Sequence record: PV340851.1
DNA length: 64,000 nt
Direction: 5' to 3' (one strand)
Below are positions 37,736 to 59,502 of the stretch, piece by piece (position 1 is the first letter of the stretch; each line of letters begins with the position of its first letter). A program made the position numbers and the translations under genes. Under the pieces are notes generated by a model, which was not told the DNA's origin, did not search any database, and was given only the letters and a program-made list of their open reading frames with translations.

Positions 37736-37809
<74 letters not shown>

Positions 37810-37813
37810 CCTC

Positions 37814-37885
37814 GCTTGCTTAGCTCAGCGGTAGAGCATCTCGTTTACACCGAGGCGGTCGGCGGTTCGATCCCGTCAGCAAGCA
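37814..37885 (+). tRNA. trnV: tRNA-Val(UAC)
   Basis: Acceptor GCTTGCT/AGCAAGC, anticodon loop TTTACAC, T-loop GTTCGAT; no encoded CCA. Confidence 0.95.
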
Positions 37886-41304: not shown

Positions 41305-41484
41305 TGCTCTGGTCGGGATGGTCTCTTGACCCCCTAGGTTTCTTTGTTCCTAAAACAAAGTGGTGCGGATGGGATACCTCCCGCCAGGTTTCTTATTTCC
41401 TGTCAAAGAATAAGTGGTGGATCCAATTGACCCCTTCCGTGTGGTTGGTTCTTGTTTACAACTAAAACAAACAAGTGGCGAGCA
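41305..41484 (+). ncRNA. Structured RNA of the manA/wcaG motif class, three UGGYG repeat units
   Basis: Closing stem TGCTC/GAGCA; three units of xGG-TTT-stem-loop-stem-TGGYG with loops complementary to the upstream xGG. Confidence 0.65.
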
Positions 41485-53732: not shown

Positions 53733-53779
53733 CATGAAGCAATGTTAAGCACCTCTAAGGTTCGTAACATGTTTTACTA

Positions 53780-53885
53780 CTGCCGCTACCGAGACTAGGC
53801 AGACAAATCCGTCTCTCATACCCACGATGGAGGGTGTCGTGGGAATATTCTAATCGTCAGTTCCCTGCTGACCTTTCTTACCCTT
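53780..53885 (+). ncRNA. PhotoRC-II-like structured psbA leader
   Basis: CTGCC/GGCAG stem with GAGAC/GTCTC pseudoknot; CCCACGAT/GTCGTGGG hairpin with GAGGGT loop; upstream of psbA. Confidence 0.7.
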
Positions 53886-57982: not shown

Positions 57983-58308
57983 TGGGCGATCACTACTTGT
58001 TAAATCTGTTTGATTGTGATAGATCAAAAGTAAATGATGAAAAATTAATCAGAAAGCTGTTGCATGACGCAGCATACTGTGCTAGAATGACTGTGTTGGA
58101 AATCGTAAGTCACAAGTTCTACCCACAGGGTGTCACTGCTGTCGCATTGCTATCTGAAAGTCACATGAGTATTCATACGTGGCCAGAGCATGGTACTGCA
58201 GCAGTAGATGTTTATACTTGTGGTGATTCAGATCCTAGTCTGGCATGTAGTGTGATCCGCACACAACTGGATGCTAGCGACTGGGACATCCAACACATTA
58301 AGAGATAA
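57982..58308 (+). CDS. speD: S-adenosylmethionine decarboxylase proenzyme
   Basis: PQGVT, LSESHMSIHTWPE self-cleavage motif, DVYTCG. Confidence 0.92.
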   Translation: MGDHYLLNLFDCDRSKVNDEKLIRKLLHDAAYCARMTVLEIVSHKFYPQGVTAVALLSESHMSIHTWPEHGTAAVDVYTCGDSDPSLACSVIRTQLDASDWDIQHIKR

Positions 58309-58331
58309 TGAAATGTATCACATGATACATC

Positions 58332-58360
58332 TTGACATCTCTATATACTAATGGTATACT
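58332..58360 (+). promoter_or_regulatory. Sigma70-type promoter for the riboswitch cassette
   Basis: TTGACA-N17-TATACT with TG extension; predicted start near 58367. Confidence 0.85.
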
Positions 58361-58369
58361 ATACCAGTA

Positions 58370-58603
58370 CGTTCATCTTATGCTCAGCACTCTGCTGGCA
58401 TTGACCCTTGCCCATCATAATGATGCATCACCCTATGGGTGGCACATGAGTTGTGAAAGGTTCCTCCAGAAACGAATTGAAATCCTTATGGATGACAATT
58501 TGGATCGACGTTCTAAATATAATCTACTAGGTTATTTTAGATCGAAGGTTGAAGGTCAATGTGAACAGACCTTAGTATAAGACGCAAGTAAGTCGCGGAA
58601 CGG
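58370..58603 (+). ncRNA. Glutamine-II (Downstream-peptide)-like aptamer 1 with ORF-filled loop
   Basis: CGTTCA...GACGCAA...GGAACGG; P1 CGTTC/GAACG; P2 TCTTATG/TATAAGA. Confidence 0.65.
58380..58580 (+). CDS. Small two-Cys protein nested in aptamer 1 (66 aa)
   Basis: Hydrophobic N-terminus; SC-x12-DDNL-x4-K-x2-L-x4-R-x6-C. Confidence 0.7.
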   Translation: MLSTLLALTLAHHNDASPYGWHMSCERFLQKRIEILMDDNLDRRSKYNLLGYFRSKVEGQCEQTLV

Positions 58604-58605
58604 AG

Positions 58606-58791
58606 CGTTCATCCCATGGTAGAATTACTACTGTACACCACACTCAGTTGCCAACAAACCGATGCTTTGATGCTGAGGATTAAGGCACATGATAACCTTA
58701 GCGATATGCTTAAGGTTGAACTGATCGAGACCGTAAGGGAATCGGCACCAGAATGTGATTGGTACTGGGACGCAAACGACTGAAGGAACGG
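58606..58791 (+). ncRNA. Glutamine-II (Downstream-peptide)-like aptamer 2 with ORF-filled loop
   Basis: CGTTCATCCCA...TGGGACGCAAACGACTGAAGGAACGG; P1 CGTTC/GAACG; P2 TCCCA/TGGGA. Confidence 0.75.
58616..58783 (+). CDS. Small two-Cys protein nested in aptamer 2 (55 aa), not in ORF track
   Basis: MVELLLYTTLSCQQTDALMLRIKAHDNLSDMLKVELIETVRESAPECDWYWDAND; paralogous pattern to the 58380 ORF. Confidence 0.7.
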   Translation: MVELLLYTTLSCQQTDALMLRIKAHDNLSDMLKVELIETVRESAPECDWYWDAND

Positions 58792-58850
58792 ATAAACGGA
58801 TCCACCGTAAGGTGAGAAGGTTAATCATCCATTCTTTTAGGAGACCTACA

Positions 58851-59018
58851 ATGAACACACTCAACCTAATCAAAAAGCAGATCAAGAAAGCATCTGCACT
58901 TCACGACGCACAAGTTCTTCACACCGTTTATCGTGGTGTTAAGTATGATACTAAGTGTGTAGAAAGCAAAGATACTCATGGTGTCTTCTGCTATCGTGGC
59001 AATACTTACGATAAGTGA
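58851..59018 (+). CDS. DUF4278-like small protein
   Basis: SD AGGAG; YRGVKY and YRG motifs. Confidence 0.75.
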   Translation: MNTLNLIKKQIKKASALHDAQVLHTVYRGVKYDTKCVESKDTHGVFCYRGNTYDK

Positions 59019-59046
59019 GAGGCAACTCTTTCTAGCAAGTAAATAA

Positions 59047-59074
59047 GAGGGGCACTTGACATGCCCCTTTTTTT
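59047..59074 (+). terminator. Intrinsic terminator closing the riboswitch operon
   Basis: GGGGCA-CTTGACA-TGCCCC plus T7. Confidence 0.75.
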
Positions 59075-59079
59075 GTATT

Positions 59080-59502
59080 ATGATGTATGAGTATCACTAC
59101 CATGAATGCAACTGGTCTCCTGCATATGGTGACTGGAGAATACATTCATTGAGTGAAGATAACAATTTAATACTACCCATTCAAAAGATAGAACATCTTC
59201 TTACTGAAGATAAATTGCAACTAGTACAGCACAAAGACATAGCATGGAAGGGAAAGCATCTATATCCATTCCATAATCTAGAGAATTGTGTGTGTTGTGA
59301 GGGCAAACGTTATGCATCGTGTGACATAAAGTATCCTGGTATCATTACCGAAGGACACAATCCATACGATAATAAATATCGTATGATAGATGGTAAGCAT
59401 CGAATGCAAAAGATGAGATACCTAGGTATGACACAGAGTCAATACTATCTCATCCCTTTCAACGAACTTATTCCATTCATTATTGAGTCGCCTTATGGAT
59501 AA
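59080..59502 (+). CDS. ParB/Srx-N-like domain protein
   Basis: KYPGII...YRMIDGKHR. Confidence 0.55.
   Translation: MMYEYHYHECNWSPAYGDWRIHSLSEDNNLILPIQKIEHLLTEDKLQLVQHKDIAWKGKHLYPFHNLENCVCCEGKRYASCDIKYPGIITEGHNPYDNKYRMIDGKHRMQKMRYLGMTQSQYYLIPFNELIPFIIESPYG

Follow-up and report, generated by a model that had tools for sequence, protein, structure and literature searches.

In the genome of the T4-like cyanomyovirus Synechococcus phage Sf-CH3 (record PV340851.1), a stretch of 64,000 nucleotides (nt), i.e. the window, contains at positions 58,332-59,018 a locus of three small genes in which a unit of the form CGUUCA-stem-[open reading frame]-stem-CGCAA...GGAACGG occurs twice ahead of a DUF4278-type gene. 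The open reading frames (ORFs) carried by units 1 and 2 are termed ORF1 and ORF2, and the DUF4278-type gene ORF3. A first-pass annotation had read this locus as two self-contained tandem riboswitch aptamers of the glutamine-II type, each folding around its own ORF. Comparative analysis indicated instead that the architecture is very probably a nested, strand-swapped pair of glutamine-type aptamers with gene-bearing loops. The twofold form itself was located as annotated, and the pattern CGCAA-N5-14-GGAACGG had exactly two occurrences in the window as compared to 0.01 expected by chance, ruling out a chance origin of the motif pair.

Pairing between the two aptamer units

Relatives were collected by pattern scans of IMG/VR (~370 loci) and covariation was counted on 120 composites from which the loops had been deleted. 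Wherever the 3' strand of unit 1 had changed to GCAACGG, unit 2 carried CGUUGA (66 of 66 contigs), and nine of these contigs also paired CGUUUA in unit 1 with GAAACGG in unit 2, a double change from C-G to U-A. The reverse scan, for a wild-type 3' strand with an altered unit 2 5' strand, returned a single uncompensated contig. The linchpin pair, which in the window is C58585:G58791 and corresponds to that of the glutamine-I family (RF01739), was swapped crosswise in 16 unique elements, with ACG[G] of unit 1 accompanied by GAACG[C] of unit 2; the same elements retained ACG[C] of unit 2 with GAACG[G] of unit 1. Crosswise compensation at three positions therefore points to one nested, strand-swapped double aptamer and not to two independent tandem units.

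Among the composites, the nested structure was 97.6% paired with 12 pairs changed on both sides, a result equalled by none of 500 shuffles. Both of its CGUUC:GAACG helices were 100% paired, with double changes, and the outer one occupies the place of P1 in RF01739. In contrast, the tandem structure left 26 unpaired cells (13 + 13) in its two CGUUC:GAACG helices, without compensation. Covariation of P1 and P2 had been proposed as a check on the first-pass annotation; the closing stems did covary over the ORFs, but P1 covaried between the units and not within them.

Helix P3 was 99.5% paired in the composites and is followed by GAAG, as in RF01739. Two independent scans counted GUC[A]/[U]GAC 83 times and GUC[G]/[C]GAC 191 times, with one A-C and no G-U combination. 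This P3 is atypical in that it spans the inner unit and ORF2. The halves of the E-loop are split between the units, AAGUA occurring in unit 1 only and GAAG in unit 2 only. Rfam aligned RF01739 over both units (i.e. CGUUCA of unit 1, a hairpin, CGCAAGUA, AGU, 38-41 nt, ACU and GAAGGAACG of unit 2) and placed the CGCAAGUA segment on ACGGAAGUA of the model. The window junction reads ACGCAAGUA, one change from this ACG-N-AAGUA consensus, and GAAGGAACG agrees with the 3' consensus. The Rfam alignment, the crosswise covariation, P3 and the split E-loop therefore argue for two cores, an outer one that forms a three-way junction of the glutamine-I type and a second one, circularly permuted, that sits at the distal end of P3. 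In RNAfold, the window RNA without its loops adopted precisely the nested fold (-27.6 kcal/mol, z -3.05), and the full 429-nt RNA with both ORFs kept the outer P1, the 9-bp ORF1 stem and the inner hairpin (z -3.28). A canonical glutamine-II P2 (CGC/GCG) was considered as a reading of the Rfam alignment and rejected, as the changes compensating GUCAC variants lay in unit 2, the adjacent GCG showing none.

The nucleotides that contact glutamine were taken from the solved glutamine-II structure (PMC6698751) and checked for conservation alone. CGC of CGCAAGUA corresponds to C17-G18-C19 of that core, and AAGUA to one half of the glutamine-I E-loop. All contact nucleotides (C1, G2, G18, C19, C39 and G40) were invariant in the outer core; in the inner core the same positions were invariant except C19, which was kept in at least 90% of elements. 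The unpaired A6 and C17 shift jointly to G6 and U17 (CGUUCG...GGGGUUGCAAG) in L040, L175, L202, L287 and other loci, an isosteric change (A-C to G-U) suggesting that the corresponding contact in the solved core has been retained as well.

Loop occupancy varied among 194 unique elements, all of which sit behind the same promoter and 5' of a DUF4278 gene: 47 carried ORFs in both loops as in the window, 126 a hairpin and then an ORF, 6 an ORF and then a hairpin, and 15 two hairpins. UCCCCC-UU-GGGGGA stands in place of ORF1 in S-SM2, and a 30-nt hairpin in Syn1. Against RF01739 (gathering cut-off of 35 bits), the whole nested span of compact, all-hairpin relatives scored 46.4, 43.6, 41.1, 40.3, 39.6, 37.0, 36.9 and 35.6 bits; against the glutamine-II family RF01704 (cut-off of 33 bits) compact relatives reached only 25.9-32.1 bits, favouring RF01739. 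Single units scored 26-34 bits on either model, and the compact S-SM2 unit 29.8 bits on RF01704 and 28.5 bits on RF01739. The proposal that these are glutamine-riboswitch sequences was upheld by the Rfam recognition of short-loop relatives, but the assignment to class II was not, as the Rfam scores overall favoured RF01739 over RF01704.

Several loci depart from the window arrangement. A second class (L130, L134, L138 and about 45 further IMG/VR loci) seems to resemble Prochlorococcus phages. Each of its units has its own mini-P3 (AG-CCGA-CU), formed locally, and the class also shows canonical ACGGAAGUA and GGAACGC, crosswise linchpin covariation and ORFs in the second loop. In L188 (IMGVR_UViG_3300020370_000097), three aptamer units lie in a row, of which the first is self-contained and the other two form a nested pair that carries a gp196-like ORF. 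In L116, a deletion has fused the 3' strand of unit 1 into the middle of ORF2.

Genes within the aptamer loops

As judged from their coding signature, families and conservation, ORF1 and ORF2 are real, conserved protein-coding genes, and the inserts are complete ORFs of the sizes first annotated. Mean pairwise differences per site among homologues were largest at the third codon position; for positions 1, 2 and 3 they were 0.21, 0.15 and 0.42 for ORF1, and for ORF2 were 0.37, 0.18 and 0.51 in a 55-amino-acid (aa) set and 0.41, 0.21 and 0.56 in a 53-aa set. ORF1, ORF2 and ORF3 were end-to-end matches to PHROGs 6471, 504 and 545, respectively. AlphaFold2 (AF2) models of ORF1 (pLDDT 78.6) and ORF2 (pLDDT 82.8) consist of an N-terminal hydrophobic helix and then a helical hairpin bracketed by two conserved cysteines. 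A PDB fold search with these models gave no match at E<3, neither protein matched Pfam, the PHROG matches were all of unknown function and none of 101 homologue clusters was named. ORF1 is without annotation in GenBank PV340851, as is the ORF2 homologue in S-CAM1 (HQ634177).

Unit 1 is closed by a 9-bp stem, UCUUAUGCU:AGUAUAAGA, which pairs the AUG region of ORF1 with its UAA stop. In ORF1-bearing elements, pairs 1-3 of this stem were never unpaired and covariation was observed at pairs 3 and 4, pair 3 being C-G in 28, U-A in 24 and U-G in one, with no mismatch. The stop codon tracks the bases 5' of the AUG, with UAAGA accompanying UCUU, UGAGA accompanying UCUC and UAGGA accompanying UCCU. On a tree built from the ORF interior, at least 10 state changes were reconstructed for pair 3 and at least 22 for pair 4, and a tree-aware test found 9 of 9 independent contrasts on supported branches to be concordant. 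In the 173 ORF2-bearing elements, pairs 3 and 4 of the ORF2 stem covaried (C-G, U-A, U-G and A-U) over 150-190 nt, with three mismatches at pair 4. Cells with G-U exceeded those with A-C (50 vs 14), so the pairing occurs in the plus-strand RNA.

The ATG of the loop ORFs lies nearly always 4 nt 3' of CGTTCA. A candidate Shine-Dalgarno (SD) sequence for ORF2, GGAG at 58602-58605, is made of the last two G of GGAACGG and the AG linker, which was present in 143 of 173 ORF2-bearing elements as compared to 1 of 21 compact ones. With the ORF1 AUG in a stem, and the ORF2 SD and AUG in the inner helix and stem, folding and initiation therefore exclude each other. At the other end of ORF2, the final codons W-D-A-N-D-stop lie in the aptamer 3' half (58771-58791). 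The closing of unit 1 between start and stop, the AUG beginning in the 5' stem strand of unit 2 and the encoding of this tail by the 3' aptamer strand had all been noted in the first-pass annotation and were borne out.

The second loop has been filled by three or more ORF families, most of which run into one and the same DAND-stop tail encoded by the aptamer. For several loop-ORF families, DAND-stop (58767-58783 in the window) is the invariant aptamer strand GAC GCA AAC GAC UGA, and the RNA therefore dictates the protein tail; the residue before DAND (W, K, Q or E) covaries with the noncoding base 5' of the AUG. The ORF2 reading frame of S-CAM1 terminates 15 nt sooner, and conservation of the 3' half persists there in noncoding form. 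Comparison of the gp197-like family with a 64-aa loop family by hhalign gave 94.8%, a value partly inflated by the shared aptamer-encoded tail, and a common origin of these two families is supported by the sequence profiles. A common origin of the gp196-like and gp197-like families was unsupported (hhalign 21%).

Table 1. Features of the three-gene locus, in window coordinates.
Feature	Position	Strand	Details
Sigma-70-type early promoter	58332-58360	+	TTGACA 58332-58337, 17-nt spacer, TATACT 58355-58360
Unit 1 5' strand CGUUCA	58370-58375	+	CGUUC (58370-74) forms outer P1 with GAACG 58786-90
ORF1 closing stem, 5' strand UCUUAUGCU	58376-58384	+	contains ORF1 AUG 58380-58382
ORF1	58380-58580	+	66 aa; syn9 gp196 family, phrog_6471; in outer aptamer hairpin loop
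ORF1 closing stem, 3' strand AGUAUAAGA	58574-58582	+	contains ORF1 stop UAA 58578-58580
Unit 1 3' half CGCAAGTAAGTCGCGGAACGG	58583-58603	+	
Unit 1 junction CGCAAGUA	58583-58590	+	columns invariant in alignment
P3 5' strand AGUCG	58591-58595	+	partner CGACU 58777-58781
Inner helix GGAACGG-AG-CGUUCA	58597-58611	+	GAACG 58598-58602 with CGUUC 58606-58610
Unit 2 5' strand CGUUCA	58606-58611	+	
ORF2 closing stem, 5' strand UCCCA	58612-58616	+	last base is A of ORF2 AUG; partner UGGGA 58766-58770
ORF2	58616-58783	+	55 aa; syn9 gp197 family, phrog_504; in inner hairpin loop
Unit 2 3' side	58766-58791	+	UGGGA stem, CGCAAA, CGACU 58777-81, GAAG 58782-85, GGAACGG 58785-91
Unit 2 3' half CGCAAACGACTGAAGGAACGG	58771-58791	+	includes last five ORF2 codons and stop
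GNRA-capped hairpin CACC-GUAA-GGUG	58803-58814	+	spacer 5' of ORF3
U/C-rich tract AUCC-A-UUCUUUUAG and SD GGAG (58840-58843)	58827-58843	+	alternative partner of CUGAAGGAAC-GGAU 58780-58793
ORF3	58851-59018	+	55 aa; DUF4278-type, two YRG motifs; syn9 gp198 family, phrog_545
Intrinsic terminator	59045-59078	+	10-bp stem (59045-59071), then T run; closes three-gene unit

A putative glutamine switch and its alternatives

ORF3 appears, as first annotated, to be a DUF4278-like gene, and lies behind a hairpin and an SD and ahead of a terminator. Its sole Pfam match was DUF4278 (PF14105; E=2e-4, 22 bits as compared to a cut-off of 25.3), and ten relatives likewise matched DUF4278 only, three of them above the cut-off. 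The family includes the glutamine-synthetase inactivating factor IF17 and is the usual gene downstream of both glutamine riboswitch classes (PMC6212724). Directly 5' of the ORF3 SD lies CUUCAG (UCUUUUAG in the window), which is complementary to CUGAAG, a sequence overlapping P3, GAAG and the ORF2 stop. This SD-proximal helix covaries: all 80 cases of CU[A]AAG had U[U]AG as the partner, and the variable G of CU[G]AAG faced C (102 cases), U (57) or A (5). When a 148-nt construct with the tail was folded with RNAfold, a helix of CUGAAGGAAC-GGAU with AUCC-A-UUCUUUUAG replaced the outer P1. The SD helix, which flanks GGAACGG, includes A33, A34 and G35 and competes with P3 and GAAG, and therefore reads better as an unbound-state helix than as a canonical P2. 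The stem of the GNRA hairpin in the spacer also covaries (CAGC/GCUG in syn9, CUGC/GCAG in S-SM2 and CUCG/CGAG in L078). This hairpin is flanked by conserved AACGGAUC and GAGAAGGUU, and the spacer insert (58796-58822) is present in some lineages only.

Moderately probable, from these comparisons, is an explanation in which the leader and body of an early operon are built around the nested double glutamine aptamer and include a switch, with the phage element presumably binding glutamine. In it, the outer aptamer is glutamine-I-like (i.e. P1, the hairpin after CGUUCA, junction CGCAAGUA, P3 AGUCG:CGACU and GAAG) and the inner aptamer a circular permutation within P3, with the P1 hairpin GAACG-GAG-CGUUC, its own stem and its own CGC. 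The variable hairpin loops have been colonised by small genes, gp196-like in the outer and gp197-like in the inner loop, each starting in the 5' strand of its stem and stopping in, or just past, the 3' strand. Without glutamine, CUGAAGGAAC would pair with the U/C-rich tract abutting the SD of the DUF4278 (IF17-like) gene and translation would be damped; with glutamine bound, the outer core would take the CUGAAGGAAC strand, freeing the SD and turning the gene on. A corresponding mechanism has been proposed for host switches, in which an inhibitory duplex is undone when glutamine binds and translation is thereby switched on (PMC6212724, PMC6698751). The folded state would bury the ORF1 AUG, the ORF2 SD and the ORF2 AUG, and ribosomes on the loop genes would keep the fold open; this is the regulatory logic first proposed, and it agrees with the anatomy. 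As about 420 nt must be transcribed before the 5' strand can pair, the loop genes would get the first translation window. Overall, low glutamine would be expected to favour the loop proteins, and high glutamine the IF17-like protein.

A more specific form of this explanation is put forward tentatively, namely a ribosome-gated riboswitch in which glutamine and ribosome traffic on the two embedded genes compete for the same strands and produce a reciprocal switch. The two Cys-pair proteins might then be made at low glutamine or on newly made RNA, and the IF17-like candidate inhibitor of host glutamine synthetase might be made at high glutamine, when the loop genes are vacated. The interlocking of the double aptamer might be what makes the two states mutually exclusive.

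Several observations weigh against the nested aptamer or its use as such a switch. No Rfam glutamine match was obtained in the window, either over its whole length at the gathering cut-off or between 58300 and 59100 at E<=10; most gene-bearing copies are invisible to Rfam because of the inserted genes. The inner linchpin base varied without compensation in about 10 elements, indicating a weaker inner core, and the inner 2-nt linker may be too short for the linchpin pair. The A33:G42 pair of glutamine-II is not kept, the window reading GGAACGGA. For the presumed sign of the switch, the host riboswitches served as the model. Translating ribosomes would hold the long-range helices open much of the time. 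Finally, a ribosome at the ORF2 UGA could sit on CUGAAG and open the SD helix regardless of glutamine, and its stop there could couple ORF3 to ORF2 independently of glutamine. A scan of cellular genomes with a 14-base junction pattern returned, among the matches listed, only chance ones in unrelated bacteria and is uninformative on the host cyanobacteria.

Much of the evidence on the loops could also be accommodated if the riboswitch controlled the DUF4278 gene alone and the small genes had merely settled in insertion-tolerant loops behind a strong early promoter. The loop genes would then be constitutively translated, with stems kept only so that ribosome-free RNAs can fold. Loop length varies, the existence of all four states of occupancy shows that the loops can be dispensed with, the same loop has been taken up by several ORF families that are unrelated or only very distantly related, and in the solved structure the hairpin loop makes no ligand contact and was swapped for UUCG in crystallisation. 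This possibility is nevertheless rather unlikely: the start codon is fixed 4 nt 3' of CGUUCA, within the stem, and the ORF2 SD is made from the inner helix and correlates with the presence of the ORF. It is therefore difficult to see how folding and initiation could proceed without some mutual interference, and the hitch-hiking and regulatory explanations differ only in whether that interference is used for regulation. A further suggestion, which we regard as improbable, is that the gene-bearing fold has ceased to sense glutamine and serves as a structural device, shielding the 5' end from RNase E or J or acting as a translation-ratio scaffold for the three genes. The outer P1 does join the extreme 5' end of the transcript to a sequence lying 415 nt further on, and long-range sensing across translated ORFs has no known precedent; a structural role, however, would not need the ligand-contact nucleotides and the linchpin, which are invariant or covarying in ORF-bearing as in compact elements.

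Two independent, side-by-side glutamine-II aptamers, in which CGUUCA and GGAACGG of the same unit pair around the ORF of that unit, are permitted by the linear order of the motifs and would be in keeping with the scores of single units and with the 157 doublets reported among tandem glutamine riboswitches (PMC9481103). RNAfold with the SD tract included also paired the 5' strand of unit 1 with the 3' strand of unit 1. On this arrangement, however, all the crosswise compensations (in 66 of 66 contigs, 9 contigs and 16 elements) become mismatches, and AAGUA remains confined to unit 1 and GAAG to unit 2, so that it was considered highly improbable. Least credible of all, and rejected, was the idea that the inverted repeats flanking the ORFs act in DNA as recombination or cassette boundaries. 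ORFs have indeed been gained and lost at exactly these sites, with different families between the same flanks, but G-U was tolerated over A-C (50 vs 14 cells, and 57 vs 0 in the SD helix), an asymmetry specific to plus-strand RNA, and the helices assemble into a known aptamer fold that Rfam recognises.

Setting of the locus, known systems and implications

The gene immediately upstream of the locus is speD, and 415 phage records matched the stretch 58250-59100. The promoter, proposed at the outset to be near-consensus sigma70, matched the consensus at 11 of 12 positions and has a TG-extended -10. Its placement is kept among related elements, the distance from the -10 to C1 being 7-9 nt in 137 of 190, and TTGACT occurred at 17-nt spacing in at least 83 of 190. 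Transcription would start 2-4 nt 5' of the first aptamer strand. The transcription unit extends for about 710 nt from promoter to terminator and holds the three small genes; a sequence scan of the unit found no internal promoter- or terminator-like sites. Within 59045-59084, the loop of the operon terminator contains the -35 TTGACA (59056) of the next promoter-like site (TTGACA-17-TATGAT), and termination and the next initiation therefore overlap. Other Rfam matches in the window were to RNAs typical of cyanophages, namely a wcaG RNA (41334-41428, 88.6 bits), a PhotoRC-II RNA (53767-53856, 60.8 bits) and two adjacent tRNA genes (37736-37885).

Glutamine riboswitches are already known, as is the fact that they can occur in tandem, are linked to DUF4278 genes and have been found in a few cyanophages. 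With glutamine-I (glnA RNA, RF01739; e.g. the Synechocystis gifB leader, PMC6212724), the phage element shares the CGUUC:GAACG P1, the hairpin after CGUUCA, ACG-N-AAGUA, P3, GAAG, the linchpin and a position upstream of a DUF4278/IF17-type gene, and its compact relatives pass the Rfam cut-off. It differs in forming P3 between units, around a second permuted aptamer, in holding 66- and 55-aa genes in hairpin loops whose closing stem of 5-9 bp is kept, and in having a C:G linchpin, as in glutamine-II; the window copy is missed by the covariance model. Features shared with glutamine-II (Downstream-peptide, RF01704; PMC6698751) are the signature CGC...GGAACGG with its C19:G41 pair, an occurrence in marine picocyanobacteria and phages, and DUF4278 downstream, whereas no phage sequence matched RF01704 at its cut-off (about 26-32 bits) and the phage SD-adjacent helix, in taking in A33, A34 and G35, resembles a competitor of the bound core rather than a canonical P2. 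The glutamine-II crystal is a domain-swapped dimer, and a two-piece RNA still bound glutamine (PMC6698751); the core therefore tolerates strand exchange and splitting. In the phage, unlike the crystal dimer, the exchange takes place within one molecule and has been fixed by evolution.

Tandem glutamine riboswitches comprise 157 doublets and 4 triplets, the doublets being treated as separate riboswitches with pseudo-cooperative control (PMC9481103). They share with the phage element two, sometimes three, aptamer sequences in a row before one gene; the phage pair differs in being interlocked, in having one shared expression platform and in carrying genes in its loops. The word 'nested' is absent from that review, and no description of protein genes in aptamer loops, or of a strand-swapped nested pair, was found in the literature searched. 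The tandem glycine riboswitch similarly has two homologous aptamers with inter-aptamer helices or contacts and one expression platform, but its aptamers are self-contained in secondary structure, whereas core helices are exchanged between the phage units. Group I introns of T4-like phages are ribozymes with mobile homing-endonuclease ORFs in peripheral loops, and their folding competes with ORF translation. They likewise show a conserved RNA fold tolerating whole ORFs in peripheral hairpin loops; the phage RNA differs in being a predicted metabolite sensor with small non-enzymatic ORFs and with start and stop codons in the closing stem.

Riboswitch aptamers are usually taken to be compact noncoding modules of the 5' untranslated region, and searches assume so. 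Here, selection has maintained the helices of the predicted sensor across translated stretches of 150-430 nt, and the sensor takes in start and stop codons. The census also changes, as the locus is present in 415 phage records and hundreds of viral contigs as compared to the two glutamine riboswitch aptamers reported in cyanophage genomes by a 2017 survey (PMC5473149). The strand swap provides a natural single-molecule counterpart of the domain-swapped dimer of the glutamine-II crystal and suggests that other 'tandem' glutamine riboswitches be re-examined. Should glutamine binding have been retained, the RNA would offer a natural example of translation and ligand sensing acting on the same strands. 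The layout, which is common in marine cyanophages, could tie three small phage proteins to the nitrogen state of the host, and suggests that the phage controls an IF17-like protein, and through it possibly host glutamine synthetase, according to host nitrogen status.

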